Below, one piece after another: positions 1,306-29,707 of a stretch of 32,000 nt of DNA; position 1 is the first letter of the stretch, and the number at the start of each line of letters is the position of its first letter. A program made the position numbers and the translations under genes. Location of the stretch: positions 60,001 through 92,000 of the forward strand of contig NW_008806289.1 of the NCBI RefSeq assembly GCF_000400465.1, in the 5' to 3' direction. The notes under the pieces are model-generated. The model was given only the letters and a program-made list of their open reading frames with translations. It was not told the DNA's origin and ran no database searches. The stretch comes from Wallemia ichthyophaga EXF-994. Lineage: Eukaryota > Fungi > Basidiomycota.

Positions 1306-1539
1306 TTACAAACCAGCTGCGTCTAATGCAGCATTCTTTGCTTCACATCCGTATGCGTCATCCCAGTGTCTTTGAGCGATGGCTTGTTGTTCTGGGGTAA
1401 AGTTCTTTTGGTTGCTGTTGAAGAGGGTGTATTCGGTAGGGAAACCTTCTGGACCGCACTTAAGTTGAGATCTATCCCAAGCGAGGACAGTTGAAGTGAG
1501 TGCGAGAATGGCTACAGAGATTGTGCTGATGAACTTCAT
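1306..1539 (-). CDS. Small secreted protein (77 aa, predicted signal peptide, 2 Cys), no recognisable family
   Basis: Intronless ORF. MKFISTISVAILALTSTVLA is a typical signal peptide (basic N-terminus, hydrophobic core, VLA cleavage site). TATA box about 70 bp upstream. Confidence 0.8.
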   Translation of the reverse strand: MKFISTISVAILALTSTVLAWDRSQLKCGPEGFPTEYTLFNSNQKNFTPEQQAIAQRHWDDAYGCEAKNAALDAAGL

Positions 1540-1607
1540 TTTACTTGGTATTGTTTTCCTGCCTTGTGAGTGTCGCGGTTAACGTATGAAGGAAATGCAC
1601 GTACTTC

Positions 1608-1615
1608 TTTTTATA
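1608..1615 (-). promoter_or_regulatory. TATA box (TATAAAAA) of the small secreted protein gene
   Basis: Plus-strand ttttttata-type run at 1608-1615 reads TATAAAAA on the minus strand, about 70 bp upstream of the ATG at 1539. Confidence 0.55.
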
Positions 1616-1957
1616 GTATGGCAGCTGTCTCCGAAATTTTCAATGTCCGCTCCGAATTCGGTATGTGATATTAAAACGCGTGTTAGATGGCCGAATTTGG
1701 TAGATCACTAAGAATAGTGTGATGTTTTTGTAAAAGTTATTGTAATTGCTACTGATATCCATTTAAGTATGTGTAGCATGTGTCAATTACATTTTTCACA
1801 AATTCCAAACATCCACGAAGCTGTCATGGACATAGAAATAGCACACAGCACAAAACACACAGAAAGAAGCACAGAGAAATAACAAAAAAAGTAAATAATC
1901 GCATTAGTTTATTATTACATCCTTTGTTTTGCTTATATGCGTATATGCGTACATGTC

Positions 1958-3827
1958 TCACTGGCTATTCAGCATCGAAAGCAACGCTTGAACTGATTGT
2001 GGGTTAGGTGGTGCTTCTGAGGGTGCTTGCTGTGGTTGTACTGGTTGCTGTTGATGTATTGATTGCTGCTGCACCGGTTGCACTGGTTGCACTGGCTGCC
2101 GCTGCTGTATACGTGGATCTCTTCCCGCTGTCGACATACCCGGTACGGAAGAAACGGGTTGCATTGTCTGATAACCGTTGTACATGGGTTGCTGAGGTGC
2201 ATTTGGCTGTGCACTCTGGTAGCCCGCTCCAGCACCCCCACCCATTCCTATTCCCATTCCTGGCATTGCTCCTGCTCCTGCTCCTACTGGGGCTGGCGCA
2301 TACCCGCCCACACTTCCACTACCACTACCGCTCACGTTACTGCTCGCTGCCTGCAAGATACTCATTATGTTTGGTGGGAGGCTGCTTTGTTGTTGCTGTG
2401 GTTGTGGTTGTGGCGGTTGGGGAGCGTGAGGTGTATGTGTATGTGCGTGTGTATGTGGATGGGGGTGCGGTTGCATGCCGAGTGGGGGTGATTGACTCGC
2501 ATAGTATGGCGGTTGCGTGGGCTGCATGAATGGCGGCGTAGGCATCATAGGTGGTGCAGTGTGTGCAGTGTGCGCGGGTGCGGGTGCGTGCGTCGGCATT
2601 TGCATCGCTCCTGCTCCTGCTCCTGCTCCTGCGCCCACTGCCGCTCCTCCCACACTCGGATTCACGTTCATGTTCATGTTCAGCGTCGACGGATTCAGCG
2701 AGCTGAGCAAAGCTTGTACACGCTGCGCATCTGCTAAGCGGGAAGTGTCTAGTGTTGTGCCATATGCATTTGCAGCATTATAAGGAGCAGGAGTAGAGGA
2801 GAGAGTAGCGGGTAGATATCCACCATAATGCTGCTGTGGCTGTGGTGGTCGACTGATTTGACCTGAAATGTTGTTAGGTGACGCACTGACAATCTTCTCT
2901 CGCTCACTCACGATTCGAATACGCGTTGCGGACATTGCTCTCATTGCTATTGTGGCCGTAGCTGCGGGGAGCACTCGGAGCACTCGGAGTACCAGAAACA
3001 CCAGAAACACCAGGACCATCACTTATACTGTCGCCGCGACGATTTTTCGACCGACGCTGACCTCCGCGTCTCGATCTTTTAGCTGCAGACTTGCTAGCAG
3101 ACTCATTGAGCGCAGCCGCAGAGAAATCCCTAGGAGGGTTGTTCACCAAATGCTCAGCACCCATTTTATCAGCATAACCACCAGATTTCTTAGGGGCGGA
3201 GACCATTGGACAATCCCATTCAAAGTAGAGGTTCAGCGTGCCATCGAGCCAAGGTTTCATATTCAGATTATCAAAAGCAGCAAGGGCAGACCTCTCGTCG
3301 AAGAATTCAACATAGCGGCTATCACTTCTATCGTCATAATCTCTGATATCTTTGACTTGGCCATATTGTTCAAACAGATCAGACAGCGCCGAGTCGTTGA
3401 TTGGCTCAGTGCAAGACTCTAACCAAACAGACAGCGTGCCTTGGTGTTTACCGCGGTCACAGGGCTGTGAAGTCTCGTCAGCCTGTGGGAGACTGTAATG
3501 GACGTCTAGGGGGCGACCACCAATATGGGAGCCCTGCATTGCATTGAAAGCAGACTCAGCGGCGCGGACGTCGAAATAAGTGATGAAGCACATACCGCGC
3601 CTCTTTATCAGGTCAAAGAAGTTAGCGAGCTCGCCGTAAGATTCAAAAGGGGTGCGTATAAGCGCTGAATCTGCTTCGTAGGCGATATTACGGACGAAGA
3701 GAGTTCTACAAGGCTTAACACGCTGTACGCGTTCATGAGGCTGGCTGTGCTGCTCGGGATCGCCGTCGAATGAAGCTGGATTTTGCGGAAGCGGGTGGTG
3801 TACGTGCTTGGATCTATCTGCTGGCAT
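1958..3827 (-). CDS. Mei2-like RNA-binding protein (RRM1+RRM2) with long P/Q/G/A low-complexity tail, about 606 aa, 2 exons
   Basis: RTLFVRNI...RGMCFITYFDVRAA...GGRPLDVHYS and QGTL...YVEFFDERSA match the Mei2/AML-type RRM1 and RRM2. A GTGAGT..CTAAC..CAG intron at 2863-2911 (49 nt) joins track ORFs 2904..3827 and 1958..3022 in frame (YSNR/QISRPP). Confidence 0.85.
2607..2630 (-). repeat. Coding hexamer microsatellite, (GCTCCT)x4 on the plus strand, encoding Gly-Ala repeats
   Basis: Four exact copies inside the RRM-protein tail. Other 6- and 9-nt coding repeats lie nearby (PVQ repeats, GVS/PSA repeats). Confidence 0.85.
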
Positions 3828-3893
3828 TTAAATTAAATTTTTTGAATTTTAAAATGGTAGTTGAGAACCAACCTGTGCAACGTACTTGCCCAA

Positions 3894-4616
3894 ATGCCAT
3901 CACCGAAAACACTAAATTTTAAGTTAGTTTTGCTGGGGGAATCAGCTGTAGGGAAATCTTCCATGTGAGTTTATATATATGTACATGTCTTTATCATCCT
4001 CTCACGCCTCCACCAGCGTCATGCGCTACGTCAACAACCAATTTTCAGACGATAGGGAATCTACGATAGGCGCGGCTTTCTTGACACAGCACATGAAAGT
4101 CGGTGAGGATACTATCAAGTTTGAAATCTGGTGGGTGCTTGATCCACCCCTGATATAATCACACTCACTCATATAATGTCTTACAGGGACACAGCCGGTC
4201 AAGAACGCTTCGTTTGTTTGGCTCCTATGTACTACAGAAACGCACACGCTGCTCTCGTCGTTTACTCTCTCGACTCCAAAGATAGCTTCGATAGGGCTGT
4301 CAAGTGGATCGAGGAACTACGGAGGCAGTCAGACACCCATACTATCATCATCCTCGCAGGCAACAAATCAGATATCCCTGATGATACCAAACAAGTCTCT
4401 CCTCATGATGCTCAGGCTGTGGCTGATGAAATGCAGGTCGAATTTTCAACCACTTGCAGCGCAAAGAGCGGTGGCGGTATTGAACAACTCTTTGTTGAGA
4501 TTGGTAACCGTCTTCCTATTGAACAAGCTAAGCAAAAGGCCTTTAAATCCCCTCAACAAGCTATCAAGCTCGATAAGGCTGACTCAAGTGGCCAAACAGA
4601 GACATGTGCTTGCTGA
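3894..4616 (+). CDS. VPS21: Rab5-family GTPase (Vps21/Ypt51/Ypt5-like), 3 exons
   Basis: Exon 1 (3894-3964) encodes FKLVLLGESAVGKSS. After intron 3965-4016 comes ESTIGAAFLTQ...KFEIW, then DTAGQERF, GNKSD, CSAK and a C-terminal CAC prenylation motif. Confidence 0.93.
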
Positions 4617-4669
4617 ATTTTCGCATTAAAGAAATGTTGTATTCATATCGAAGGTATATTGATATTGTG

Positions 4670-5436
4670 TTAAAACTGATCGATTGTTGTCTTCTTTTTA
4701 CCCAATTTCATTCCACTGCCCTTGAATCCAGATGATGTTTGAGTTGAAGGGGGTGTAGGTGCGGCGGATGCGGATGAAGGTGAAGGTGCATCAAATGAAG
4801 GTGAAATGTTAAGCTCAGAGGAAGAAGAGTACTTGCCAGCAGATAAACCAGTTTGTGCACCAACTTTTGCAGCTTCCCTACGTTGCATCTCTAAAGCTCT
4901 CGCCCGTCTCTTCAACTCCTCCTTAGCCTCCATTTCTTTGTTCTTTGCAATAATATCTTGAATCTTTTCCTCGTGACTCTCCATTTCCAACAAAGATTTA
5001 ATTTGGTGTATGTTGTTGTTGTCTCTGTATCCAAACGCAATAATTTCATCCCAAGCGACCAACAAATCGAAAGCGTTATTAATAACAGACTCCTGGGTGT
5101 GCTGCTTAATGATATCGATAGTTATCCTGCTAAATAAAGATAAAGATTCAATGTCCTGGAGTATATTTGAACCCTTGTTTGTGATCAGCACCAGATAGAG
5201 CTCATCTAGTGGCTGATACACAAATCTTATGTTTTCAATTTCAACTGTAGTATGCTGGCTGCCTAAGGGAATTAACTTTGGGAACGTATTGAGTAAGCCT
5301 TCTACTCTAGATCTTGTCAATTGCATGTATTGACGGGATATGATGGCTATGTGTGTTTTTGAGAAATGTCTTAATATCCCAATACAAACCCACGCTTTCC
5401 TGATTTCGTTGAGATGGCTGCGCTTAGAATGGTCAT
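4670..5436 (-). CDS. RET2: Coatomer subunit delta (longin domain plus helices only, about 239 aa, no mu-homology domain), 2 exons
   Basis: ATG at 5436, MTILSAAISTKSGK, intron 5347-5393 (GTGGGT..TAG), then PIISRQY...RFVYQPLDELY...SNILQD...MESHEEKI...GMKLGKK. This is the canonical delta-COP N-terminal half. Confidence 0.92.
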
Positions 5437-5592
5437 TGTGGTTGTTGAGGTGTGAGGTGTGAGGTGGGAGCAAGTATTTCTTTAGTTTTATATTTTAATA
5501 TTTCCGTGTTTTTATGTTTTTATAATTATATTTCAATTCTTAATACACCCTTCCGCCTTCTCGACCCATCACCACCCGACCACTCACTCACG

Positions 5593-7021
5593 ATGGAATC
5601 TGCCATTCTTGAATTGATAAGCCATAATGACATCACTGATCCAAACCAGCTTCTCAGGCTCCTTATTTTTCACTATCCATCCCTCAACCTTTCTTTCAAT
5701 CATTATGACCTAATCACCGATTCTCTATCAAACCTCCGTTTAAGCCTCCCTTCAACATCTTATACTCCTTTTTCCCCACAGAAACCATCGCTGTACTCTT
5801 CCTACGCCCGTTCTATCATTCCTGATGAAAATTTTATCCAAATTTGTCCTAACACGACCAGATCTGACTGTACCTTGGAATGTACTAGCGTACACTTTCA
5901 ACCTATTCTCAAGCCATACTCTGATCATTCATTCGGTCACTGCTCTTATCTTAACACTTGCTACCCTTTCTACAACAACACCCCTCCTTCCCTCTCAAAC
6001 GCTTTTCAAGCTACAAAGCTCAACAGCCCCAGATTAGACCGTACTTGCAGATATTTGCATTTTGAGCTGGAGCAGCCTACTCCTCCAACTAAAAGTCGCT
6101 ATACTGATCTAGTTGATGGTGAATCTCTCAATTACAGATCAGATTTGGATAAGTTGCTCAATAACAAGAGATTTCCCGCCCAATATCTCAATTGCGATCT
6201 CAGATCATTCGATTACAACACCCTCGGCAAGTTTCAAATTATTGTGGCCGACCCTCCTTGGGATATACATATGAGTTTACCCTATGGTACTCTTACAGAT
6301 GATGAAATGCGTAAAATGCCTATGTCAACACTCTCAGAAGAAGGTACGCTTATCTTTCTCTGGGTCACAGGCCGTGCTATGGATTTGGGCAGAGAATGTC
6401 TTTCAATTTGGGGGTTGGTGAATTTAATGTGTTGTTGTCTCTAACTGACAAACATTGACAGCTTCAAAAGAGTTTGTATAATCTTTTAAACGGTTGGCAT
6501 CTGATGAAAAAACTCCAGGTCGAGGAAATAGCCTGGGTGAAGATCAACCAACTTCAGCGTCTGATACGCACAGGTCGTACAGGACACTGGCTTAATCACA
6601 CTAAAGAGCATTGTCTGGTCGGTATCAAAGTGTCCGAAGATGGTGTCGTCCGTTGGCCTGAGTGGTTGAACAAAGGCATAGATTGCGATGTGATAGTTAG
6701 CGAGGGTGGGTAATGGTCTTTAGAGCACTTGAATTGAACTTTGATATAATAAACAGTACGCGAAACGAGTCGGAAACCAGACGAACTTTATGGTATGATC
6801 GAGAGGTGCTGCCCTTCAGGTCGCAAAGTGGAGTTGTTCGGTCGGCGGCACAACGGACGTGATGGTTGGCTCACATTAGGAAATCAGATAGGGAAGGATG
6901 TTGTACATGACAATGATCTCGCAAGCAGGTTGAATGCAAGGTGTGTATGAGGTGCTAGGATTACAATACAATGCTAATATGTTACAGGTACCCGGAGAAG
7001 AAGATACAAAGTCAGTCGTAG
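5593..7021 (+). CDS. IME4: mRNA m6A methyltransferase catalytic subunit (METTL3/Ime4, MT-A70 family), 5 exons
   Basis: Cys/His zinc-finger region (VHF..CSYLNTC..CRYLHFE), catalytic [41 protein letters not shown] and C-terminal RYP. Introns 6414-6461, 6472-6518, 6706-6756, 6941-6987. Confidence 0.93.
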
Positions 7022-7743
7022 GATGATAAAAAAGCACCCAAACCGGAGCTGGGTGTATTAGGTTGCGAGCTGCTATTGCTATTGGTATTGCTCTTGCTGT
7101 TTTTGTCCATTTCGCGAACCTTGTTTCGAGCTAGAAGTTCTTGTAGACTTGAAGGATGTTTGCCTTTCTTCCTTTTCTTGTTGCTGGTATTTGTCTGTGG
7201 TTGTGACTCATGTGACTGCTGAGACACAGGCATAGGTGAGGCTGCCCTACTTGAAGAAGCCGAGCCACCAGAGCTCATCTCCTCCAATATGATTGAAGGA
7301 TCGTAAGTCAAATCACTGAGATATTTCCGCTTGCGCGACTCGTAATCGCGGATGTTGGAGACAGAGGAGCCTGGCAAGCTGTAAACGAAATGGCAAGTGA
7401 GGCAATGAGCTATGATGTAGTTCCTGATTATATCGCCTTCCTTGGAACCTTGTTCGCCGTGCTCTTGCGCCTTCCTTTGCTTTCTTCTAAGCTTCTTCTT
7501 GGCGGATGCGATAGAGCGTCTAGAGCGGGTGGACGTAGTAACAGATCGACGCATGCTGCCGCACTTTGGACAGTGCGGATACAGCTCACTGTGTTGTTTG
7601 GGGATGGATTGCTCTGACTTCTCCACGCCGGCGCGGAAGAGCAAGTGGGAGTATCCAGAGTATTCAGGGCAGAGTTCCGATAGTTCGTGTGCCAATCTGT
7701 GCCTGTAAAGAAGGTTTTTCTGGGCTTCTGTGGCTGTCGACAT
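7012..7743 (-). CDS. Rpr2/Rpp21/Snm1-like zinc-ribbon subunit of RNase P/MRP (243 aa from the ATG at 7743)
   Basis: CPKC...CLTC zinc pair preceded by a helical region and followed by a Lys/Ser-rich tail. Intronless. The track start at 7860 overlaps the next gene and is unlikely. Confidence 0.65.
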   Translation of the reverse strand: MSTATEAQKNLLYRHRLAHELSELCPEYSGYSHLLFRAGVEKSEQSIPKQHSELYPHCPKCGSMRRSVTTSTRSRRSIASAKKKLRRKQRKAQEHGEQGSKEGDIIRNYIIAHCLTCHFVYSLPGSSVSNIRDYESRKRKYLSDLTYDPSIILEEMSSGGSASSSRAASPMPVSQQSHESQPQTNTSNKKRKKGKHPSSLQELLARNKVREMDKNSKSNTNSNSSSQPNTPSSGLGAFLSSYD

Positions 7744-7793
7744 GGCTGTGTGCGTTAGAGAGTGACGTCCAACGCGATTTAAATATTTTCCAT

Positions 7794-9134
7794 ATGGCAG
7801 ATAACCTAGAGCACCCAGACCACGGCAAGGATACCCCTTACTTTGCTTACTACGCCGCACTCGTTAACCAGGCTAATATGCTCATGGATTCTGCTCGTAC
7901 TGGTGTTTATCAGCAAAGCATCCTTGGTAACTCTCAAACGGCTTTCTTGGGAAAGGATGTACTCGACGTCGGTGCTGGCTCCGGCATTCTCTCCTTCTTC
8001 AGCGCTCAGGCAGGTGCTAAAACCGTTTACGCTTGCGAAGCTTCAGATATCGCATCGAAATTGCAGCTGATTGTCGATGAAGCTGATAATGGTGGCAAGA
8101 ATGCCTTCCTCAAGGATAAAATTAAAGTTGTTAAATGTTTGTTTTGGGTAGTGAAAAATTTACACACACTAATTCACCCATAGCTAAGATAGAAGATGCT
8201 GCTACTAGCCATTCGATACCCAAAAAGGTTGATACTATCGTCAGTGAACCAATCGGTGTTCTCCTCGTTCATGAACGTATGATTGAGTCTTTCATCGAGG
8301 CACGCGATAAATTCCTTAAGCCCGGTGGATCCATGTTCCCTTCGTCAGGTTGGTGAAACAAGATGGCTTAGCTTGAATACATCTTAACATGCCCACTTCA
8401 GGAACAATTGAACTTGCCCCATTCACTGATGACGCCTTATACACTGAGACAGCACAGAAAAGTGGATTTTTCCAGCAAACTAACTTTCTCGGCGTTGATT
8501 TGAGTGTTTTGCAAGACGCTGCAAATGAAGAAGCTTTTAGTGGGTTTACCAGGGTGTTTGAGGCTGTCCAACTAACCCCAAGACAGGTCAACCCGTCGTT
8601 GGAATGTTCCCACCAAACCAACTTATCGCAAACACTACAAACAATCACCTCATAGACTTTTATACATGCTCGATGAACGATCTAACCTCATTCACTATAC
8701 CATTCACCTGGCAAATCACACGAACGGCACTTTTGCATGGAATTGGTGGATGGTTTGACCTGCATTTCAAAGCAACACAAGCAGGTGGATTGGATTTATA
8801 TCTTTCTACAGGTCCAACAGCTCCACGTACTCATTGGCAAGCTACGCGACTGCTTTTTAGGGAACCATTAGCAGTAAACGCGGGAGAAGTGGTTAAAGGG
8901 GAGCTTAAATTTAGTGTGAACGATCAAAGAAGCTATGATATAGTTGGTACAACAGAAATACAAACGTCCAAGGAATTCTACACAGCTCAACATCCTCAAA
9001 GTAAATCAAACCCTTACGTCAGAAAACAAGTATGGAGATTACATGACCAGACGTATAATTACAACTACAGCAATATGTATCACATACCAGAGAGCATGGC
9101 AGCTGCATATTCAGGATATGAGCCAGTTGCTTAG
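7794..9134 (+). CDS. CARM1: Type I protein arginine methyltransferase, CARM1/PRMT4-like, 4 exons
   Basis: YFAYY..QANMLMD..RTGVYQ, VLDVGAGSGILS, double-E loop SEPIGVLLVHERM, LAPFTD..LY, GVDLS, QPVVG, LSTGP..PRTHW and QRSYDI all parallel CARM1 rather than PRMT1. Introns 8137-8183, 8349-8401 and one near 8540-8587. Confidence 0.85.
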
Positions 9135-9169
9135 GCTTTGTCTCTTGTATCCAAACCATCATCATCTTC

Positions 9170-11348
9170 ATGTCGTTGCGAGATCGCCAGAGGAAGAATA
9201 TTGAAAATATTTTGAATTTCAACGATAATAAGAAAACGAGTGATTTAGTGTGGAAGGTGTTGGTGCTTGATGGCGTATCTAAGGATGTCCTCAGCACCGC
9301 CGTTAAAGTACAGGATCTTAGGGAACAGGGCGTGACACTACATGCGTGAGGATTCACTTATAACACATACACGCACGCTCACAGTGTCCAGATTCCTCCA
9401 CAACGAAAGACCTCAAATGAGTGATGTTCCTGCCATTTACTTTGTAGAGCCATCGGTGGATAACATGAAGCGTATCGCTGCAGATGTCGGCAACTCGCTC
9501 TACGAATCATTCTACATCAATTTCACGTCACATATACCCAAACATCTTCTTGAGCAACTCGCCAGCTCAATCGCCCAAACGGGGAGAGAGGATTTAGTAA
9601 AGCAGGTTTATGATCAATACTTAGACTACGTAGTTTTATCACCCACTCTATTCTCTCTTCTCCCTTCCTCTTCCACACCTTCGTTTCAGATTCTCAACCA
9701 TCCGTCTTCCTCAGAGGAGATTATAGAAGCGGAAGTCGACAGGATTTCGCAGAGCTTGTTCAGCGTTCTCGGTACTGTTGGGTCTGTACCCATTATCAGA
9801 TGTCCGCGCGGTAATGCGTCGGAAATGGTAGCCCGTAAGCTAGATGAACGTTTGAGGGATCATCTCCTCTCTACGCGCAATTCTAGTCTTTTCAATGAAG
9901 ATAGATCTCTTCAGAGACCCCTGCTTATTCTGTTCGATAGGACCCTCGATCTCATACCAATGTTCTCGCACAGCTGGACATACCAGGCACTTATTGGTGA
10001 TGTACTCGACCTGAAGCTCAACAGAGTCAAAGTAGAGACGCCAGAAAATGGAAAATTGTCGAAAAAGTCATACGATCTCGACTATAAGGATTTTTTCTGG
10101 TCTAAAAATGCTCCAAACCCTTTCCCACAAGTCGCAGAGGAGATCGACGCTGAGCTTACCAAGTACAAATATGACGCAAGTGAGATTACCAAGTCGACTG
10201 GAGTATCTGATGTGAAAGATATTAGTCAAGTGTGGGTTGCTCAATATAGGTGAAACTGTGGTCTGACGTACGTACTATAGCGACTTTTCTTCAAATGCTG
10301 CTAATCTTAAGAGCGCTATCACCGCCTTACCGGAGTTGACTGCGAGGAAGACTACGTTGGACTCGCATATGAATATCGCTACATCATTGCTCACTGCTAT
10401 CAAGACTAGAGGGCTCGATACCCTTTTCCAGACTGAGGAAGTTGCAGCCAGACAGGTGAGGGCGTTTTATTGACCAAATTGTCATCTGAACTTTACACAA
10501 TCAGTCTAAAAATCAAATCCTTGACGTATTGAAAGAAGTCGATGGGGCTACTCCTGATGATAAACTTAGATTGATTATCATTTGGTATCTTTCAGTTCCT
10601 TCTCCTAATTCGGCTGATGTTGCTGAGTTGGAGAGGTACTTGGCTGATAAGGGTATCGATTTGAAACCATTTTCTTATATTAAGCAGTGGGTTGGAGGTT
10701 TTACGAAATTTATCTCTTACAAGATGAAATAGAGCTCGCCAAGTGAGCAGAATGACTTCACTTACTGCTGCTGCGTCGACCGTTGCTGCTGCTCCTACTA
10801 ATGGTGGTAGTGATTTATTTAAAGGATTTAGTTCGATAAGTAACAGAGTAGGTAGAATTTTGATAAATGGTCAACAACTAACATTTCATAGCTCACCGAC
10901 AGATTGCGTGAAGGTGGTGTAGGATTTGACAATATACTCTCAGGAGTAAAAAACTTCCTTCCAGCCAAGAGTAGGTCGATTATTGGTGGGATTGATATCC
11001 ACTTACTTTGTTTTCACAGAGGAGCTGGCTATCACAAGACTGACAGAGGCACTTATGGACCCGTACAACTGCTCATCACAAGCTAGTCAGGACGTAGACG
11101 ATTACCTCTATTTCGATCCAAAGCAGTCGAGGTCGACATATGGGCAGAAACCAAGACAGCAGGGTGGCCACAAGCAGAGCTTCGATGAGTCGTTGGTATT
11201 TGTCGTTGGTGGTGCTTCTCTGGTGGAACATGCCAACCTTGTGGAGTGGGCGACGCGCCCTCAACAAACGCAAAAGAAGGTAACTTATGGTGGAACAGAT
11301 ATAAGCTCACCCAAGGAGTTTGTTGGTGTATTATCAAATTTATCATAA
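9170..11348 (+). CDS. SLY1: Sec1/Munc18-family protein Sly1 (ER-Golgi), multi-exon
   Basis: MSLRDRQ...VWKVLVLD...[71 protein letters not shown]. Stop at 11346-11348. Confidence 0.93.
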
Positions 11349-11396
11349 GGAATTATGTATATATCTATATAAACTGAGGCAAAGGAAATAAGGCAA

Positions 11397-12290
11397 TCAA
11401 GTACCGAAACCAGCCCATTCTAAGGAAATATAATCGACTTTGTTAGTCTTGTCGTTGTAAGAAGCTAGAAGGTGAACTTTTTTAACAGTAGTGCCTAAAC
11501 GACCCAAAGCGACAATGTCGATGGGCTTAATTGAGGAGGACATGCTTTCTAAGACGGTGACAGTGAAATGACTGTGATAACGAAGAGGATCACCGGGATA
11601 AACGAGTAAATGACCACCGAAACGAATACCATCACCCATGAACATACCTCTTTGCCAGAGATCTTTGAAAACTCTGCACTTGTTTAGTTCAAGGGGTGTT
11701 TCTGGGTATGTCCAAACATTTGCACTTCTAGCGCTATCTAAGTCAGAGTAGATTAGATTATCGTTATCGAACGTGTATTCTGAAGTAGCGGGTACTGTGA
11801 TAGTAAAAGTATTTGGTAACCTCGATTTCTTCTCATCAACTGGAATTGGTGAAGACTGAGTGAAAGTTGAATCTGTCTCAAACATGAAACCAGCTTTAGA
11901 TTTAGCAGCAGCTCTCTCTTCTCTCTTCTGTTGACGCCTTTGGACATCTTTATCAGAAAGCACTGGCTCTTTGGAATTCCTAGCCTTTGTCTCTTGTGCT
12001 TCCAGTTCAATTTGATGAAGTTTGTGTTGGTGATAGTGATTGATCTCATCATTAGTAGGCAATCTAGCATCATTTAAATCCACAAACTGAGCCACGCCTT
12101 GCTCAACCAATACCCAGGCTTCTTCTGGTAGTAAAAGCAGTGGTGGCCCAAGGAATACATTCTGCTGCTGTATCCCTGGCAGTGTGCCTACAAGTATTCC
12201 TGATATATGGTACTCCACTCTAAGCCTAGCAATATCCCATACATTCCAAATATACGCTCGTTTGTTCGAAACCCCAATCTTTATTTTCAT
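11397..12290 (-). CDS. SEN34: tRNA-splicing endonuclease catalytic subunit Sen34 (297 aa)
   Basis: GILVGTLP..QQNVFLG.PLLLLPEE, FGGHLLVYPGDPLRYHSH and RLGTTVKK, with the catalytic Y/H/K triad present. Intronless, ATG at 12290. Confidence 0.93.
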   Translation of the reverse strand: MKIKIGVSNKRAYIWNVWDIARLRVEYHISGILVGTLPGIQQQNVFLGPPLLLLPEEAWVLVEQGVAQFVDLNDARLPTNDEINHYHQHKLHQIELEAQETKARNSKEPVLSDKDVQRRQQKREERAAAKSKAGFMFETDSTFTQSSPIPVDEKKSRLPNTFTITVPATSEYTFDNDNLIYSDLDSARSANVWTYPETPLELNKCRVFKDLWQRGMFMGDGIRFGGHLLVYPGDPLRYHSHFTVTVLESMSSSIKPIDIVALGRLGTTVKKVHLLASYNDKTNKVDYISLEWAGFGT

Positions 12291-12310
12291 CGTTTTGAAC
12301 AACAACGACC

Positions 12311-14470
12311 ATGAAAATTATTGATAAAATTAGCCAGTCACGGGAGTCTAATGAGCCGTTCTTCAGCCTTGAGTTGTGTGTTCAGTCATTCCATTTCTAT
12401 TCTCTTTCTCACTCCAGCTCAGCTTCCCTCCGAAAACTGAGCAGGTTCGTTGGCGTGTACTCGAAAAATCCCCTCTAATTCCTTAAAAGGGCTTCGTTAA
12501 CCTTAAATCTCGTCTTCAACGACTCTCTCTCCTCAATCCTGGCTTCATTTCCGTCACTTGGGGCGCCGGTGGCAGTACTGACGAGCGATCCCTCGAATTA
12601 GCCGCAACCGCTCGATCCTTAGGCTTAGATGTTCTCTTGCACCTCACTTGCACTAATATGCACAAAACTCGCATCGATTCCGCTCTCGATAGAGCCAAAC
12701 AGCTCGGAATTGATAACATTCTCGCCCTTAGAGGTGACCCTCCACGAGGCCATGAGTATTGGATTGAGACTGATGCAGCTTTCCGCCATTCCTCAGACCT
12801 CGTTCATTACATCAGACAAAGACACGGCGATTCGTTTTGTATCGGTGTAGCTGCTTATCCAGAGTGTCATAAAGACTCCTCCAGCGCTGCACAGGATCTC
12901 AATTATCTCAAACTCAAACAAGATCTAGGCGCTGATTTCATCATCACTCAACTCTTCTACGATAGCGATGCTTTCCTCAATTGGCTTGACAAGTGCGCGA
13001 CGAATGGTATCGAAATCCCAATCATACCCGGTATTATGCCTATACAAAACGTACCAAGTTTGCGCAGATTGGCTAACCTCTGTGGCGCGCATATCCCATC
13101 TGTAATCTCGGATCACTTGGAACCTATCAAGGTGCGTGCTGTAATACTAAAGTATTCATTTAGCAGCTAACACATACAAAGAATGACGATGCTTTGGTTA
13201 AGGATTACGGTGTTGAGCTGTCGACATCGATGGTGCGCCAACTGATCGATAAAACTAACAGCGAGAAAGATAAATACCGTCATTTGAGTCTACACGCCAC
13301 ACATTTCTGCACTCTTAATCTTGAAAAGAGTGTGAGGAGAATACTAGCCAATCTTGGTTGGTCCGCTGGACTCGACTCTTCTAGTTTAGAACCTAACGGT
13401 CTCACAAACAAGAATTCTGATGCCTTGGAACGGGCACGCCTCGGAAACAGACTGGTAGCAGAGGTGAGTTGGTCGTGGCAACCTATTTCTTAATGACAAA
13501 GTGATAAACTGACAAAAATCAAGAATGGCAGCACAGGTCACGATACATCGGGAGCTCCACCACAACTGAGCATAACAGCTCATGAAGCAGCAGTGAGGGC
13601 GCTGCACGCACTTAAACACCATCCACCATCTGAAGACTCAGGTTTGCCGTCTTCCAACAAGACATCATCTGGTGGTAATAGTCTATGGGACGAATTTCCA
13701 AATGGTCGTTATGGTGATATCAGATCACCGGCTTATGGTGAATTAGATGGATGGGGTGCATCACTCAAAACGTCCTCCCAAAACGCTCTCAGACAGTGGG
13801 GTTATCCACTACAAACAAGTGATATTAATGAAATATTCAAGAAATACATCAATGGCGATATATCATGTCTGCCTTGGTTTGAGGAGAATCTCGATCCCGA
13901 GTCAAACTCTATCAAAGATTATTTGTTCAAATTGGCAGAAAAGGGTTGGTGGACCGTCGGTTCACAGCCTGCTGTCGATGCTATTGAATCTAGTGATGCT
14001 GTTTTTGGGTTTGGACCTAAGAATGGATGGATCTTCCAAAAAGCTTTCGTCGAATTTTGGGTACCTGACCATCAACTCGAACCGCTCTGTAAGAGATTGG
14101 ATGGCTGGAAAGATGGTGGTTATTATGCAGGTAATGCCAAGGGAGAAATGAGAAGTAATTTTTATGAGGATACCATCAATGCTGTCACTTGGGGTATCTT
14201 TCCAGGTCAAGAAGTAGTCCAAACGACGATAATTGAAGATGTTTCATTCAACGCATGGAGGGTGGGTTATGATATATTGTAAAGATCTCAGCTGAAGATT
14301 TTCTGCAGGAGGAAGCATTCGACATTTGGCTTGAATGGTCAATGCTCTACAGCCCCAAGAGCGCAAGCCAACAGCTAATGAAGAATGTACATGATAATTA
14401 CTGGCTGGTGAGTGTCGTGCATCACGACTACAAGGATACATATGGATTATGGGATTTCTTGCTATCATAA
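12311..14470 (+). CDS. MET12: Methylenetetrahydrofolate reductase (Met12-like), multi-exon including a 22-nt exon (12423-12444)
   Basis: MKIIDKI...SLEFFPPKT, VTWGAGG, HLTCTN, LALRGDPP, ITQLFYD, PGIMPIQ; regulatory domain WDEFPNGRYGD..SPAYGE, FQKAFVEF, AVTWGIFPG.E. MTHFR identity is firm; the Met12 versus Met13 subtype is less certain. Confidence 0.88.
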
Positions 14471-14537
14471 AGATAATATTGTAACAATAAATAGAACAAC
14501 TTTGGTAATTATGTAACGCAAAAGTGCAGTGTGTTTA

Positions 14538-16884
14538 CTAGCTGCTGTACTGATTTTCAATAATCTCTCCAACTAAGGTGGCAGATTTCGGTTCTATGTC
14601 TTGAGCGATAGCGAAATGCCTAGCGGCACCAGCAGCGTTACCGAGACGGCGATAGACACGACCGAGGAGGAGATGAACGTTGACTTCATCAGGTGCTGCA
14701 TCCTTCAAGAAGAGGAGATCAGGGAGTGCTAGCTGAGGGTGATTTTAATTATGATACTTTTAGTAGCAGCAACACTACACACCTGGAACTTGTTCATCAA
14801 AAAGAGTATATGAGCGCGTTTGTATCTCGCCAGAGCGCTATTCTCTTGTAGCTTGCAAGCCTTATTATAAGCGTGATATGCGGCATCAAGAAGATCAATT
14901 CTGTCTCTATCAGCGATCCCTTTCTCAATAGCGGATCCCACTGAGCAGAGGAGAACGACATTTGAGGGGTTAATATCGGTAGCTTTCTTGAAGTGGTATT
15001 CCGATAGCGTCGTCTTGCCTTGGTTGAGATAGACGATACCTAAGCCATACCAAGCGTTATACATGCGTCTATCGATGCGTATAGCAGTCTGGAACCACTG
15101 TGCAGCATTATCCCACTCCTCTTTAGCAATGCATTCGTGTCCGGCGAGTACATTACTGTATGCGGAGAGGGGTGCTACTGCAGCAGCGCGAGTGAAAGCG
15201 ACGAGAGCATCAGCGTGTTCATTCGATAATGACAGTGCATTCCCGAGAGCGATCCACGACTGACACGATTTCTTATCGACACGGACGAGATCGTGCGCCA
15301 GAAAAGCGAGCGACGTAGGCCGGTTAAGATGCCACAGCACCGTCGAGTAGATATCCATATCCTCACTTCTATGCGGAGCTAGTGCGCGCGCCGCTGCGAA
15401 TGCCCGCTCGGACTGTTGTGAGTGGTGAGTGGCAAGTAGTAATAAACGCACGTTTCACACACCTTAATGTAGTCAGCACATTCAAAATACGCCCGGCCCA
15501 GCCAGCATAGAGTCGTGGGTGTGCGCGCGGGCCCGCTACCGACGTGTGTGCCGTATGCACCCGCACCAAGATCAGGACCGAGAAGCGCATTCAGCGTTGA
15601 TATCGCCTCGTGGCTACGGTAAGCACCTAGTGCCGCGCGCGCAGTCGCGAGCGTACGTAATAGCTCGTTTAGCTGCTCCTCCCCCTCCCTCGCATTCTCG
15701 CCTGCTTGTTTGGTAGTGTTGCTTACGCCGTTACTGTCGCCATTGCTCTGGCTTTGGCTCTGACTCTGACTCTGGCTAGAGTGCCCAGTCGCACGCGACA
15801 TCTTGCTCGCAGCTAATGGTGATGGCTTCTTCCGCTTGTCGCGCGCGGGCGGCTGTAATTGGTGAGATACTCACATCGCTCGGCAACCCCATGACTAACC
15901 TTGGATATACCAACTTTGGAGGTAAAGTTGGCTAGTCTGTTACTTCGTCTCGCCTGTGCTAGTGTGTCGGGTGTTTGTTTGGCTGGCTGTGTAGTTGGGT
16001 GAGTGATTATGCGTCGTTGCAACTAGCACGCTCCCACCTTCTTTGTTATGGGTCTGAGACTTGATTGGAGGAGACTTTGCTTTTGGGTGGCACGTGGACG
16101 CTTTGGGAGAACTGATGGGGGGAGAGCGAAGCTGTCGTCGTCAGTGAAAGTGTTGTTCTGAGTGCTGGGTGGAGTTAGTGAGTAGAAAGAGATGAATCAC
16201 AACGAACATTGGATTGGTAGGGGTGTCGATGGATAACGTAGGTGGACGAAATTTGGCTACTGGGCGAGGAGCCATATCCGGAGTGAAGAGGCCGACGTCG
16301 GAAAATGAGGTAGAGTGCCGCAGAGAGGGTTGTTGGTAAGGTTGTGAGGGTACTTGTGAGGGATTTGATAATAGAAGAGTTGGATTTGGATTAGCTCCCA
16401 ACGCGCAAAGAGCATCAAAAGCCTCCCAAAGAGAATGATCAAGGGAGAGAGCTTGATTGAAGTAATCAATAGCGGACTTGTGGTTGTTTGTAGATTTAGC
16501 GATTCTGCCTAACCTACAGGCAGTAGCAGCGGTAGAAGAAGCAGTACCAATGGATAGAGAAGGAGAGAGAAGAAGCGTGTTTCGATCAAGTAAGGCGTGT
16601 GCTTGCTTAGCAGCTTTCATAGCGTCCAAGTGAATATTTAGTTTTTCTGAAACCTCAGCGAGGAGTAACCAAGACTTAACGTCGTGTTGGATTTCATCGT
16701 AGTTTTCGATGAGAAGGTCGTAGCATTCGATGAATCTGGAAGAGTTGAGTAGAGTGAAAGCCAAAGAGTAGATTGAGGTCGTGGATTTGTTGATTGAGTA
16801 GAGTAGACTAGAGTAGAAATAGGCTGATTCGATGAGTGAGTGGCTACACGTGTATTCTATAAGGTTGATTAAATTTTCAATCAT
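14538..16884 (-). CDS. CDC27: Anaphase-promoting complex TPR subunit Cdc27/APC3, multi-exon
   Basis: N-terminal ANAPC3-like helices, then LWEAF..LC.LG, a low-complexity linker, DMDIYSTVLWHL, SWIALGN..SL..EH, YNAWYGLG, and last exon PDEVNVHLLLGRVY...AQDIEPK ending TAG at 14538-14540. Confidence 0.92.
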
Positions 16885-16916
16885 TATCAAATTAAGACAA
16901 AGTGAAAAGAAATAAA

Positions 16917-16922
16917 ACGCGT
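16917..16922. promoter_or_regulatory. MCB element (ACGCGT) 33 bp upstream of the CDC27 ATG
   Basis: AAAACGCGTG read directly in the CDC27/HRR25 divergent promoter. Function is inferred. Confidence 0.4.
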
Positions 16923-17189
16923 GAATTTGATTGAGTGATGGTGGAATGGGTTAAGGGTGAGATAGTGAGATGGAAAGCGGATAGACAAGGTGAGTGAATG
17001 AGGTAGATGTATATAAAGAGCCAGACGAAATTAAATTAAAATAATTTTATTCCAATTTTAATTTAAATTACTTTCTAGTGGTGTGGATTATCCCGCCGTC
17101 ATCGAGCCTTGTTTAGTCTCTACAAGGTTTGAGACGTAAGTTGGGAATAAAAATAAAAAAATCTAAATTCTAAATATCTTGATAGAATC

Positions 17190-18515
17190 ATGGATAGCAA
17201 TATTCTCAGTATGGACCTCCGCGTTGGCGGTAAGTATAGAATTGGTAAGAAAATAGGTTCAGGTTCATTTGGTGGGTGTTTATTAGGCTGATTATAATTT
17301 CCCTATCTAAGTTACGTCAAAGGTGATATCTATCTTGGTGTTAATATCATCTCTGGTGAAGAGGTGGCTATCAAATTAGAATCCATCAAGGCAAAGCACC
17401 CACAGCTTGAGTATGAGGTGGGTTTGGTGTGCTTTATAGGCATTTACACATGTCTGATTACAACCAATCACAGGCGAAAGTATACAAAACTCTTGCTGGC
17501 GGTGTTGGTGTCCCTTTCGTACGTTGGTTTGGTAGAGAATGCGATTACAATGCAATGGTTAGTTGGAATTATCCCAATCAATTTCAAGTTCCCCTAACAC
17601 ATCTCTATCAAGGTCATTGACCTCCTCGGTCCCTCCCTTGAAGACCTTTTCAACTTCTGTAATCGCCGTTTCACCTTGAAAACCGTTTTACTCCTCGCAG
17701 ATCAACTAATTTCACGCATTGAATACATTCACAGCGTGAGTTTAATCTTACTCCTCCTACTCAACTCTCTTACCTTGAATTAAAAGCGCAATTTCATCCA
17801 CCGTGACATCAAACCTGATAATTTTCTTATGGGCATCGCTAAAAGAGGAAACCAAGTTAACATCATCGATTTCGGTTTAGCTAAGAAGTATAGAGACCCA
17901 AAAACTCATTTACACATACCTTATCGTGAGAATAAGAACCTCACTGGTACTGCACGTTACACTTCCATCAATACTCACTTGGGCGTAGAGCAATCTAGAC
18001 GTGATGATCTAGAATCCTTAGGGTACGTTTTCATGTACTTCTTACGTGGTCAATTACCTTGGCAAGGTCTCAAAGCTACCACAAAGAAGCAAAAATATGA
18101 TAGAATTATGGAGAAAAAGATGGTTAGCTCAACTGAAGTTTTATGTCGCGGTTTCCCTCATGAGTTTGCTATCTACCTCAATTACACTAGATCTTTACGG
18201 TTCGACGATAAGCCTGATTACTCTTACTTGAGAAGGTTATTCAGAGACTTATTCATTAGGCAAGGCTTCCAATACGATTATGTTTTCGATTGGTCTGTTC
18301 AACAGAGATACGATGATAGACGTAAACAAGCTCCTGAAGAGGCTACCACTCAAGCTGCCACAGGTGCTCAAACTCCTGCTGCTGCTGCAGCTAACCCCTC
18401 AGCTCAACCCGCTGTTAAACAATCTGACAGAGTTTTGAGATCATCAACTCGTCATGCAGATGGTCAGCCACAACCACAAGCAGGACCTTCTGGATCTAGA
18501 CAAGCATGGTATTAA
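17190..18515 (+). CDS. HRR25: Casein kinase I (Hrr25/Hhp1, CK1 delta/epsilon type), multi-exon
   Basis: [55 protein letters not shown]. No C-terminal CC palmitoylation motif. In-frame ATGs at 17190 and 17211; TATATAAA at 17010-17017. Confidence 0.95.
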
Positions 18516-18760
18516 ATTCATTACTCTGAACAATCCAATTTCAACACTTGAACAAATCTATCTACTCACTTGACTCTTCAATAATCAAACTTCAACGCTG
18601 TTTAGGCTCTCTATTTACTCTTGACTTTGTTATATCAAGCTTCTTCCAATTCATAGTAGTTTATAACTTTAATAGTGGTGTGCTGTGGGAGTATTTGTGT
18701 GTTGCGTGTGCTGTGCGTGTGTGTTGAACTACACACACCTCCTTCTCAACAACCATCATC

Positions 18761-19119
18761 ATGTTTGGTTTAGCAAGTCAGTAGCTGATTTATTTCAACC
18801 GCTTCAATTAACGCGCTCCAAGAACTCACGCATTACGCATTCGATGCTGTGCTCATCTCAATCGTCCTAGCAGGCGTGAAAAGATCGACTGGGTTAACGT
18901 GAGTACATATTTTACACCAAATAATTTACTTAGGCAAACCAAGACTGGCTTTGAAGAGGGTGAAGAATAAGGATGCCAGAGGTGAGTACTGTCTCCGCTC
19001 ACTTGATATCTCACAATCCAGCAGGCATTATCAAATCCTGGCTGAATATTGGAGAGTATTGCTTCGACGCTGCTGTGATCATGATGCAGCGATCAAATTC
19101 ATTCATAAGAGATGCTTAA
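18761..19119 (+). CDS. ATG44: Mitofissin Atg44 (DUF1748/PF08520-like) microprotein, about 74 aa, 4 exons, absent from the ORF track
   Basis: Exons 18761-18776, 18823-18898, 18944-18981 and 19022(or 19025)-19119 splice to MFGLAKLTHYAFDAVLISIVLAGVKRSTGLTLALKRVKNKDAR(A)GIIKSWLNIGEYCFDAAVIMMQRSNSFIRDA. This matches the family pattern H..D.VL.S..LAG.KR.TGL...YLN.GE...D. Confidence 0.85.
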
Positions 19120-19334
19120 GAGCATTTACAGCGGATCAAATCCATTTAAGTTATCTTGTACTTGTAATTCTCGTGTATCAATCTACTTTCTATTTTCGTT
19201 TGCTACGCTTGAGAATCATGTAATGTTTGTACGTCTATTCACAGCCAAAAGAGACTAAATTTGTTTACAAAATGGGTATTATATTGATATTAAATACTCA
19301 AAACACCATATCCATCTTTCAAATTTCTAATCAC

Positions 19335-19412
19335 ACGCGTTCCCAGTTGTGCTTGTGAATCGATACGGCGCAGTGGCGACGGAGCTGCAGTTGCAGATCA
19401 AATAGCGCGTTT
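19335..19412. promoter_or_regulatory. MCB-like elements upstream of RAD54 (ACGCGT at 19335-19340; GCGCGTTT at about 19405-19412)
   Basis: Motifs read directly, about 110-180 bp upstream of the ATG at 19518. MBF control of recombination genes is established in yeasts. Confidence 0.45.
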
Positions 19413-19517
19413 TACATGAGAATAATCACATATATTCATCTCCAGCAACGCCTTGGCTCTTGTCTTGCTATTACGCCCACATTCCTCCTTCTTATCAACC
19501 ATCATTTTCTCATCTCA

Positions 19518-22410
19518 ATGTACCGCGGGAAACCAGTCGATAATCCAGGCGAGCCTTCGTCGTCAACATCGTCTACAGGCAGCGCATCCGGCGCTCCATC
19601 GTCCTCAGCCCTCTCCAAGCCTTTCAAAGTCCCGACAGTCTCTTCAGACAGACTTCGATCAGCAGCTCCAAAGCGCGTTGCGAAGAAGCGAGTGTCATAC
19701 AAGGAAGACGACTTGAAAGAAAATCGCAAAAGGGGCAGAACTGATGACGCATATGAGGATGATAGCGGCGTCGATAGGGAATTAGGTTTCGACCTCAAGA
19801 CACTCTATCCAGTATACCAAGTACGCTCAGCGAGTGCCGTACTAGGACGGGGATTCAGAATACCTTCGATCAAGGATAAATCGACGGGCGAGCAAGTGGT
19901 TGTACCGCTGTCGGGCGTCGCGTTGGGCACGCGCATACAACCTCCCATGCCACCCAGGCCTCTACATGATCCTATGGGCGAGCATGCTATTGTGCTCTAT
20001 GATCCTACTGTGGATTTTGTCGAGGAGGTGAAGGATGAAAGTGAGAGTGTGGCCCCCGCTGAACCTCCTAAGCCTGTCGATAGGCGCAATCGCTCCGTTA
20101 AGGAAATACTCGGTATCAAAAATAGAGACGAGCTCGAGAAGGAGGTCCAGCAGGTGCCCGTCGTCATTGATCCTAGACTATCGAAAGTATTACGGCCCCA
20201 CCAAGTTGAAGGTGTCAAGGTGAGACTCGTGGTGAATCGACACCATTCGCACAGCTGACACCTTCTTCAGTTTTTGTACAGATGTACCACTGGTCTCGTG
20301 TCGCCGAGCGCTCATGGTTGCATCATGGCAGATGAAATGGGTTTAGGTGGGTGATACACTCTCGTCGTCTTATCATTCACTAACTTTTACTTTCAGGTAA
20401 AACAGTACGTATTGATTTTTATTGATATATCACACTCTGACGACGCTTAACAGCTTCAGTGTATCGCTCTGCTCTGGACTCTGCTCAAGCAGTCACCCCG
20501 TCCTGGGAGGCCGACAGTGGATAAGTGCATCATCGTATGTCCAAGCTCGCTTGTGCGAAATTGGGCGAACGAATTTACAAAATGGCTCGGTCCAAATCAA
20601 GTTGGATGTTTAGTTGTCGATCACAAAGGCACAAAGGAGCAACTGCACAACGAAGTCAAGCAATGGTGTATGGCATCGGGAAGGAGTGTTACTCTACCAG
20701 GTTGGTGGTTTGTTTATCTATCCATCGCATATCATACTGATAAGCTGCAGTCATGATCGTATCGTATGAGACTCTCCGAACACTTCAAAGTGTAATTGGT
20801 AAAGCGCAAGTTGGTTTAATGATGCTCGACGAAGGTCACAGATTGAAGAATTCAGAATCGACTACATTTAAGACACTCACTGAGATACAGTGTACACGGC
20901 GAGTCATTCTCTCAGGTACACCCATACAGAATGACCTATCAGAGTACTTCTCGTTGCTTCAATTCGCTAATCCTGACTACCTCGGTAATAAGAATGAGTT
21001 TAGGAAGAACTTTGAAAATATCATTTTGAGAGGTCGCGATGCCCTCGCAACAGATAAGGAAAAGCAGATGAGTGAGGAGAAGCTGAAGGAACTTAATGGA
21101 TTAGTCAGTAAATTCATTATACGGCGTACAAACGACATTCTTTCAAAGTTCTTACCAGTCAAGTATGAGCATGTGGTATTCACGGGAATGTCACCACTGC
21201 AGTTGGAGCTGTACAAATTCTTTATCAACTCTCCTGAAACACAAACCATGCTGAAAGGAAAAACATCAAGACCACTGAAAGCCATAACGATTCTCAAGAA
21301 GCTGTGTAATCATCCAGATCTGGTTAGCATTAAGGATGATATACCGGGCTCTAAGAATCTTCTACCTCCTGATTATGTTGCAGAGAGATTGGATAAAAAC
21401 CTGCCACCAAATCCTTCATGGAGTGGCAAAATGATGGTCTTGATGAGGTTGGTAATTGGGTGTTGCAGACGTAATAAACTCTAATATCACTATAGATTTA
21501 TACAACGCATGCGTGCAAACTCTGACGACAAGATTGTCTTGGTTAGCAATTATACCCAGACGCTCGATCTACTCGAGAAGCTCTTCATGGCACTAAGGTA
21601 CGTTGTAAGTGATAATGTGGGTAAATAATCTCATGTTTCTTCAGGTGGTCATTCCTACGTTTAGACGGAACAGCTGCAGTTTCTAAGCGTGCAAAGCTGG
21701 TCGACAGATTCAATCAGCCAGATTCAAGGGAGTTCATCTTCCTCCTCTCCTCTAAAGCTGGTGGATGTGGATTGAATCTGATAGGTGCAAACAGACTGAT
21801 ATTGTTTGATCCAGGTTGGTTAGGTGTCGAGCTCAAGGTGAAAACTAACGCGACCTAACAGACTGGAATCCAGCTGCAGATCAGCAAGCGCTTGCGAGAG
21901 TGTGGCGTGATGGACAGAAGAAAGAATGCTTTGTGTATAGGTTCATCGGTACAGGTACGCTAGAAGAGCAAGTCCTGATGAGACAGGCATACAAGCAGTC
22001 GCTGTCGGCGTGTGTAGTGGATGAAGCCGAAGACGCCGATCGACACTTCTCCAAGGACTTGCTGAGGGAGATATTCAAGCATTACCCAGATACGCCTAGT
22101 CACATGCACGATACGTTCAAGTGTAAGCGTTGTGATGCAGAGACGGGGAAGCAGAAAGTAAAAGCGCCTGCATTGTTATATGGAGATGTTAGCACGTAAG
22201 TGGATAGATAGAGTAAGATTAAGACAAGGTCTAATAAGACACAACAGGTGGAACCACTATTCAAACGCGTGCCTGGAGAATATTCACGATGATTTGCTCA
22301 GGGCAGAAACTGGAGTGGGTGATGTAACCAAAGTTTTCCAAGTGAGTTTTTTACGGATTAGGAAAAGGAAAAGACTAATAGAATTACAATCACAGTATAT
22401 AAGTCATTAG
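19518..22410 (+). CDS. RAD54: SNF2-family DNA translocase Rad54, multi-exon
   Basis: Rad54_N region ([16 protein letters not shown]), [99 protein letters not shown]. Confidence 0.95.
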
Positions 22411-23144
22411 GATTGAATAAAAATTTTGATATTTATTTATAGCATCGATTGCTTTGTACTATTAGTCACAAATTAACCCATCAAGCGTCATTTGAGTTGA
22501 TCAAAATACCTTTACCCCGAACTTATTATGTTTAGATTTTCGTCAATCCCCACTCGTTCTTGAAGGCATTTTCTTTCTTCTCCTTGTATGATTTTAGTGC
22601 GTTCCTGGTTCTTTTGCTGATCACTACAATATCTTGGGCGTAGAGCAATTACATATGCTCATTCTCGCGCTATTTTTTCATCATAGCGAGCATTTCTTAG
22701 AATTGAGCGTTTGAAGCCATTCGCAAGATATATTATAGTGTCATTATCCACCAAATGGCTCTCCTGTATAAATTACTTCTGTTAGATAATTACTTGTGGT
22801 TGCGACTGGTCGGCATTCGACCCGTTTATCGCCTGTAGCCTCGATTCTTTCTCAGGAGTCAAACACAGACCTAACCTAGTTTAATACTGTGTCTTATCTA
22901 CATACTGCATTCATACTTGTTTCCTCGTTGACAAAATTTTCTCATTTCATTCAGAATCTGTGAGATATCGTCGCTTAGTCGAAAATTTTCACCTCAGCCA
23001 CTATTGAAAAAGAGCTCGTTCAAATTTCTTTCCTTGGTCGAAATTATTTTTCGTCCGCCCCGGAACTCATTTTAGGGTTTCGCTGAATTTAGCTTACGCT
23101 TCGTTGTACCATTACCACCACAAAACACAGCAAATAGCGAGTTG

Positions 23145-29690: not shown

Positions 29691-29707
29691 CACCAAGGAA
29701 GAAGGAA

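Follow-up and report, generated by a model that had tools for sequence, protein, structure and literature searches.

How little DNA can separate two divergent start codons before the promoter of each gene has to be sought in the coding sequence of the other? This question is raised by a 32,000-nucleotide (nt) stretch of the genome of the basidiomycete Wallemia ichthyophaga EXF-994 (contig NW_008806289.1, positions 60,001 to 92,000; hereafter the window), in which SEN34, encoding the catalytic subunit of the tRNA-splicing endonuclease, and the gene for a MET13-type methylenetetrahydrofolate reductase (MTHFR) are arranged head to head. On the minus strand, SEN34 starts at 12290, its ATG appearing as CAT at 12288-12290 of the plus strand, and the ATG of MTHFR occupies 12311-12313 on the plus strand; the two genes diverge from a common upstream region of only 20 nt, ATG to ATG. 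The original prediction, made from the letters of this DNA, had placed the two ATGs at these positions with a gap of 20 nt, and our reading of the sequence bore it out. The evidence presented below confirmed that the two starts are real and secure, and indicated that such a pair is ordinary for its genome.

The translation of SEN34 was an exact match to an annotated W. ichthyophaga protein. Its residues 203-287 matched the tRNA intron endonuclease catalytic domain (PF01974, E = 3.8e-17), and the N-terminal domain TSEN34_N (PF26577) appears in the precomputed table for that protein. By this combination of a catalytic domain and a Sen34-type N-terminal domain, the predicted product is a Sen34 protein. 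When 14 Sen34 proteins from basidiomycetes were aligned with it, the Tyr, His and Lys positions Y231, H239, H241, K270 and K271 of the catalytic domain, among which are the catalytic residues, were invariant; W15, D19 and R24, close to the N-terminus, were invariant as well. The Wallemia N-termini were the shortest of the alignment, with Met1 placed where the homologues begin. Upstream, the reading frame is closed by an in-frame stop at 12318-12320, 10 codons before the ATG, with no other ATG between them. A downstream start is not credible because the next in-frame Met is found only near residue 144, and initiation there would delete invariant residues.

The MTHFR model was built by homology, and its five introns, of 45-60 nt each, all have GT..AG borders. 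The N-terminal 243 amino acids (aa) matched PF02219 (8.6e-91) along profile positions 1-239, and the annotated MTHFR protein is recorded as carrying PF21895, the regulatory domain found at the C-terminus of eukaryotic MTHFRs. With PF02219 from the N-terminus onwards followed by PF21895, the deduced protein is of the eukaryotic MET13 type. Its N-terminus, MKIIDKIS..FFSLEFFPPKT, aligned from Met1 with the MTHFRs of several fungal phyla, a green alga and other eukaryotes. An in-frame stop is located at 12296-12298, five codons before the ATG, and the next in-frame Met is residue 86, past the invariant FFPPKT and TWGAGG segments.

The public gene table of strain EXF-994 (assembly GCA_000400465.1, contig KE007239.1, a 12.9-kb stretch of which matches window 5397-18290 exactly as its reverse complement) was made with GeneMark-ES (PMC3849046) and gives another start for MTHFR. 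In that annotation the protein has 624 aa and begins at 12351, leaving an apparent gap of 60 nt to SEN34. We could reproduce a length of 624 aa only by joining MSRSSALSCV to FPPKTEQ, which replaces the conserved 22-residue N-terminus. The ATG at 12351 is not present in two other Wallemia lineages, and the comparison of the sequences indicates that this public start is probably wrong. The gene models of the original prediction were right, and for MTHFR better than the public model of EXF-994.

An independent assembly of a second W. ichthyophaga strain carries the same junction DNA, with six differences over 3074 nt and none of them near the starts, and in its annotation (GCA_004918235.1) MTHFR has 636 aa and begins 20 nt from SEN34. 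The locus was also recovered from the two other Wallemia lineages, in one case from a Logan assembly and in the other from ENA/Logan assemblies; the short Logan contigs L005-L007 were treated as genomic DNA because they retain the MTHFR introns and span several genes. The second of these lineages has a GC content of about 40%, as W. sebi does (PMC3849046). Their Sen34 proteins are 82% and 74% identical to that of W. ichthyophaga, both with 297 aa, and the gene order APC3-like, MTHFR, SEN34, Sec1-family, PRMT is the same in both. The two ATGs and the two N-termini are kept in these lineages, separated by spacers of 32 and 31 nt, relative to which the W. ichthyophaga spacer lacks about 12-13 nt from its middle. 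Because domain, alignment, second-strain and relative evidence supports both ATGs, neither a misassembly nor an incorrect gene model can explain the short distance. The security that had been claimed for the starts was upheld by the upstream in-frame stops, by the homologues aligned from Met1 and by the ATGs kept in the relatives; true starts farther downstream, an outcome that was considered capable of overturning it, would come at the price of conserved residues.

A pre-initiation complex of RNA polymerase II (Pol II) covers several tens of base pairs (bp). Because 20 nt cannot hold two core promoters, the core promoter of each gene must lie at least partly on the coding DNA of its partner. 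The original prediction had placed the promoters in the partner coding sequences by the same reasoning, and the inference is sound, since it sets the established size of the pre-initiation complex against a distance of 20 nt.

This arrangement had been regarded as an unusual, coding-embedded oddity of the pair, a framing that did not hold once the neighbourhood was considered. We counted the gaps between coding sequences in two public gene tables, which together extend over the window and the flank to its right; the annotation of the right half was reached through one of two window proteins that had usable exact matches, and belongs to another W. ichthyophaga strain. The 16 gaps between neighbouring pairs in and beside the window measure 17, 20, 35, 48, 50, 55, 59, 61, 65, 67, 151, 156, 257, 305, 556 and 676 nt; their median is 63 nt. 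A spacing of 17-70 nt is the rule here for divergent, convergent and tandem neighbours (Table 1). At the scale of the genome, W. ichthyophaga is known to be unusually compact, with 9.6 Mb, 514 genes per Mb and about three quarters of its DNA in coding sequence, and W. sebi has 9.8 Mb (PMC3849046); the window gaps together with these statistics describe a genome of the compact type, with intergenic spacers that are too short in all orientations. That study deals with the same organism and the same phenomenon, and it is silent on the spacing of start codons, on untranslated regions (UTRs) and on transcript overlap; its GeneMark-ES model of MTHFR hides the 20-nt gap. Compaction itself is thus already published, the gap of 20 nt can be read from one public annotation, and the pair is ordinary for its genome. 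The window contains no tRNA genes and no Rfam families; therefore, no hidden RNA gene accounts for the spacing.

Table 1. Features of the SEN34/MTHFR locus and distances between neighbouring coding sequences in and beside the window.
Feature	Position in the window	Strand	Description
SEN34, tRNA-splicing endonuclease catalytic subunit	11397..12290	-	single exon, 297 aa; stop 11397-11399
Spacer between the divergent start codons	12291..12310	.	CGTTTTGAACAACAACGACC, 20 nt
MTHFR (MET13-type methylenetetrahydrofolate reductase)	12311..14470	+	636 aa, homology-built model
MTHFR exons	12311-12375, 12423-12444, 12490-13131, 13182-13463, 13524-14261, 14309-14470	+	six exons
First exon of MTHFR in the EXF-994 public annotation	12351..12379	+	GeneMark-ES; out of frame with 12311, shifted splice donor
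CATG palindrome at the MTHFR start	12310..12313	.	makes a minus-strand ATG, 12312-12310
AT-rich patch over the spacer and the adjoining first codons of SEN34 and MTHFR	12275..12340	.	28-33% GC vs 44% for the locus
Divergent gaps			20, 50, 55, 65 (probably 17), 156, 305, 676 nt
Convergent gaps			48, 59, 61, 65, 67, 151, 257 nt
Tandem gaps			35, 556 nt

Taken as a whole, we consider it probable that SEN34 and MTHFR form a compaction-driven head-to-head pair with a single short initiation zone, a local extreme of the organization of the whole genome and no dedicated regulatory device. According to this proposal, loss of intergenic DNA would have brought the starts of two unrelated housekeeping genes to within 20 nt, with a further deletion of about 12 nt in W. 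ichthyophaga as compared with the relatives that have 32 and 31 nt. Both genes would be served by one initiation zone of low information content, made of the spacer and the AT-rich first few dozen coding bases of each, and each core promoter would lie on DNA that also encodes the N-terminus of the partner. In each of the three lineages, the GC content over +/-300 nt is lowest at the spacer or in MTHFR exon 1, which is compatible with the patch at 12275-12340 being a candidate common nucleosome-poor or initiation zone. The positions of the transcript starts are what we infer on this basis: the MTHFR mRNA would most likely begin within the SEN34 coding region, giving a head-to-head overlap, and the SEN34 mRNA of W. 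ichthyophaga would more likely begin within the spacer or at its edge, with a leader of about 20 nt or less.

The sequence clues to these transcript starts are mixed, with an upstream ATG (uATG) of SEN34 on one side and an ATG-free stretch before MTHFR on the other. The plus strand is free of ATG for 104 nt upstream of the MTHFR start, 84 nt of it SEN34 coding sequence, which allows a putative MTHFR leader that runs into SEN34; in the two relatives, the SEN34 strand contains no ATG over the 137 and 190 nt that precede the gene. The palindrome at the MTHFR start, in turn, gives rise to a minus-strand ATG (12312-12310) that precedes the SEN34 start codon by 22 nt; it is in another frame and opens an upstream open reading frame of 28 codons that runs across the SEN34 start. 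The two relatives have GATG there and lack this uATG. In W. ichthyophaga, the presence of this uATG speaks for a SEN34 leader no longer than about 20 nt, or else for leaky scanning past a uATG in weak context. Inspection of the three lineages by eye showed no conserved TATA-like element before MTHFR, and the sole common feature was a T-rich stretch upstream of SEN34, the complement of the DKI codons GATAAAAT, 33-41 nt from the SEN34 ATG.

Several of the data weigh against the proposal of a compaction-driven pair with a shared initiation zone. The uATG at -22 would be a handicap to a SEN34 leader long enough to enter MTHFR, and the overlap of the two mRNAs is itself deduced from the sequence. 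The spacer aligns poorly across the three Wallemia lineages, its common part being only AAC..CGA just before the MTHFR ATG, and with such poor conservation no specific promoter element was identified. In favour of the proposal, 12 of 13 starts in the window have no out-of-frame uATG within 50 nt (null 0.61, binomial p ~0.015), a depletion that would fit leaders of at least 50 nt that enter neighbouring genes; the sample of 13 starts is small, however, and the cut-off was chosen post hoc. Excess synonymous conservation in the first codons, which the original prediction had proposed to look for, was not found among the three lineages, a comparison of low power: in SEN34, 7/17 of the codons considered among codons 1-25 were fully conserved vs 57/185 in the rest (p=0.42), the figures for codons 1-50 were 14/38 vs 50/164 (p=0.45), and MTHFR exon 1 gave 3/9 against a background of 0.34, counted by hand because tblastn missed the two short first exons. 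Nothing in these counts suggests a sequence-specific element within the 5' coding sequence.

The main rival to this proposal is a pair of near-leaderless mRNAs that do not overlap, in which both transcripts would start within the 20-nt spacer and carry leaders of a few to about 20 nt, with the promoters still in the coding sequence of the partner. The uATG located 22 nt upstream of SEN34 would fall outside such an mRNA, and the T-rich complement of the DKI codons, if it acted as a TATA-like element about 30 nt from the start, would put the SEN34 transcript start in the spacer. Very short leaders are also known in microsporidia and some protists. With leaders of 20 nt or less, on the other hand, there would be no need for the 104 nt before MTHFR, and the 137-190 nt before SEN34 in the relatives, which extend far into the partner gene, to be free of ATG, and in yeast leaders shorter than about 12 nt lead to leaky scanning; we regard this alternative as unlikely, if deserving of attention. 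Far less probable is an error in one of the gene models, with SEN34 or MTHFR truly starting at a downstream ATG or in an upstream spliced exon and the genes being ordinarily spaced. The EXF-994 annotation, with MTHFR from 12351 and a gap of 60 nt, speaks for it; yet that model swaps the conserved N-terminus for an out-of-frame peptide from an ATG that is missing in the relatives, both N-termini align from Met1 and the next in-frame Met costs invariant residues, the annotation of the second strain gives 636 aa and a gap of 20 nt, and even the 12351 model leaves no more than 60 nt. We give this possibility almost no weight.

A dedicated bidirectional promoter, by which tight pairing would have been selected in order to co-regulate tRNA splicing and one-carbon metabolism, would be in line with the retention of the pair in three Wallemia lineages, and head-to-head pairs are often co-expressed in other organisms. 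What is retained in Wallemia, however, is the entire gene order, so that the synteny is not specific to the pair; the spacer differs in length among the lineages and shows little conservation; and unrelated neighbours are equally tight in all orientations. Outside the genus, SEN34 has other neighbours in Schizophyllum commune and in Meredithblackwellia eburnea, basidiomycetes with larger, non-compact genomes, and in neither of them is the neighbour MTHFR. The pairing is therefore conserved no further than general synteny, being kept in Wallemia with the whole neighbourhood and absent in two other basidiomycetes, and this absence argues against a functional coupling of SEN34 and MTHFR. Selection for co-regulation is, in our opinion, highly improbable.

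An 8-nt inverted repeat around the spacer (ATTTTCAT/ATGAAAAT) was considered as a signal and rejected, as both proteins begin with Met-Lys-Ile and the repeat has 6 nt in the relatives. A protein search returned no spliced Wallemia MTHFR product, and our search of the literature on UTRs, transcript overlap and bidirectional promoters in Wallemia found nothing relevant.

The annotated divergent neighbours of SEN34 in the other two basidiomycetes are of interest on their own. In S. commune the coding starts are 43-44 nt apart (fragment L010, positions 4955-5004) and in M. eburnea 113 nt apart (fragment L009, positions 4887-5001). Basidiomycetes may have such short head-to-head distances more often than is assumed, or the models of those annotated neighbours may be wrong.

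In microsporidia such as Encephalitozoon cuniculi and Antonospora locustae, and in nucleomorphs, the intergenic regions are too short, and transcripts and their signals enter the neighbouring genes on either strand (PMC2742732). The situation in Wallemia is alike, with spacers that are too short for promoters, UTRs and terminators. The organisms differ, since microsporidia and nucleomorphs live inside other cells, as parasites or as remnants of endosymbionts, and have few introns or none, whereas Wallemia is a free-living basidiomycete with many short introns; the kind of evidence differs too, as the overlap has been described for microsporidia and in Wallemia is deduced from the sequence.

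With the bidirectional promoters of yeast, plants and mammals, the SEN34/MTHFR junction has in common the divergent orientation, a short common upstream region and probably one nucleosome-poor zone. Classic bidirectional promoters have about 100-1000 bp between the transcript starts, and the promoter is contained in non-coding DNA. In contrast, with start codons only 20 nt apart the promoter DNA of SEN34 and MTHFR must also be coding, and the pair is a limiting case of the bidirectional promoter.

Another pair in the window (29688-29758) is probably just as extreme. The start of an IES1-like gene at 29690 (minus strand) is 17 nt from an in-frame ATG at 29708 of the gene for mitochondrial uS4 (uS4m, NAM9-like). 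The public model of uS4m starts at 29756, and initiation at 29708 adds 16 residues, which can be aligned to the N-terminal ends of uS4m in the solved structures from Neurospora and yeast (query residues 8-12 vs chain residues 9-10). From this alignment, 29690/29708 is a probable second extreme head-to-head pair, in which the public start of uS4m would be too far downstream.

At positions 9132-9172 of the window, the stop codon of a PRMT-type methyltransferase gene (9134) is followed in tandem by the ATG of a SLY1/Sec1-family gene (9170), 35 nt away. Because this gap is only 35 nt, the 3' end of the PRMT gene and the promoter of the SLY1-like gene must overlap coding sequence, or else the two genes are co-transcribed. 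Neighbouring genes of basidiomycetes are reported to share polycistronic or read-through transcripts (PMC4503453); that work deals with tandem genes on the same strand, as at the PRMT/SLY1 gap, and not with divergent starts. The PRMT gene also takes part in a divergent pair (window 7741-7796), in which its start at 7794 (plus strand) is 50 nt from that of a gene for a 243-aa protein at 7743 (minus strand). The 7743 start is embedded in CATG and the 7794 start in CATATG, and each puts an antisense ATG some 50 nt before the partner start.

If the proposed organization is extended from this locus to the genome, the coding sequences of neighbouring genes in Wallemia would contain the majority of its Pol II promoters, 5' leaders and 3' ends, and antisense overlap of 5' ends, as proposed for SEN34/MTHFR and for IES1-like/uS4m, would be routine. 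We advance this extension tentatively, being somewhat more inclined to doubt it than to accept it. If true, it would make Wallemia a culturable, free-living and intron-rich model in which promoter and coding sequence share one DNA without strong synonymous constraint. The locus itself is a verified example, in a fungus that grows in laboratory culture, of a promoter that necessarily lies on coding DNA, to which the second probable case adds. It also provides a test case for the lower limit of intergenic length in eukaryotes, whose cost would be either overlapping antisense 5' ends or near-leaderless mRNAs.

Gene callers stumble in the W. ichthyophaga genome, as illustrated by the wrongly placed start of MTHFR, by a fusion of 1605 aa and by the probable misplacement of the uS4m start; therefore, Wallemia annotations should be checked by homology and RNA evidence before intergenic regions or promoters are analysed. 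The fusion is found in another W. ichthyophaga strain (window ~17190-24418; fragment L008, positions 1-6824), where a protein kinase, a mitofissin, a Rad54-type helicase and a further kinase are joined in one model of 1605 aa, apparently a gene-caller artefact of tiny intergenic gaps. Two single-exon open reading frames that had been guessed in the window, 20753-21484 and 2904-3827, had no exact protein match.

Finally, the 3' junction of MTHFR (window 14440-14503) is conserved, unlike the 5' spacer. Directly after the MTHFR stop codon stands TGTAACAATAAATAGAACAA, which includes AATAAA and is nearly identical in the three Wallemia lineages, and seven of the eight last informative MTHFR codons are identical in the three (Fisher p=0.003, post hoc). 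The block is likely a 3'-end processing signal inside the 67-nt gap to the convergent APC3-like gene.

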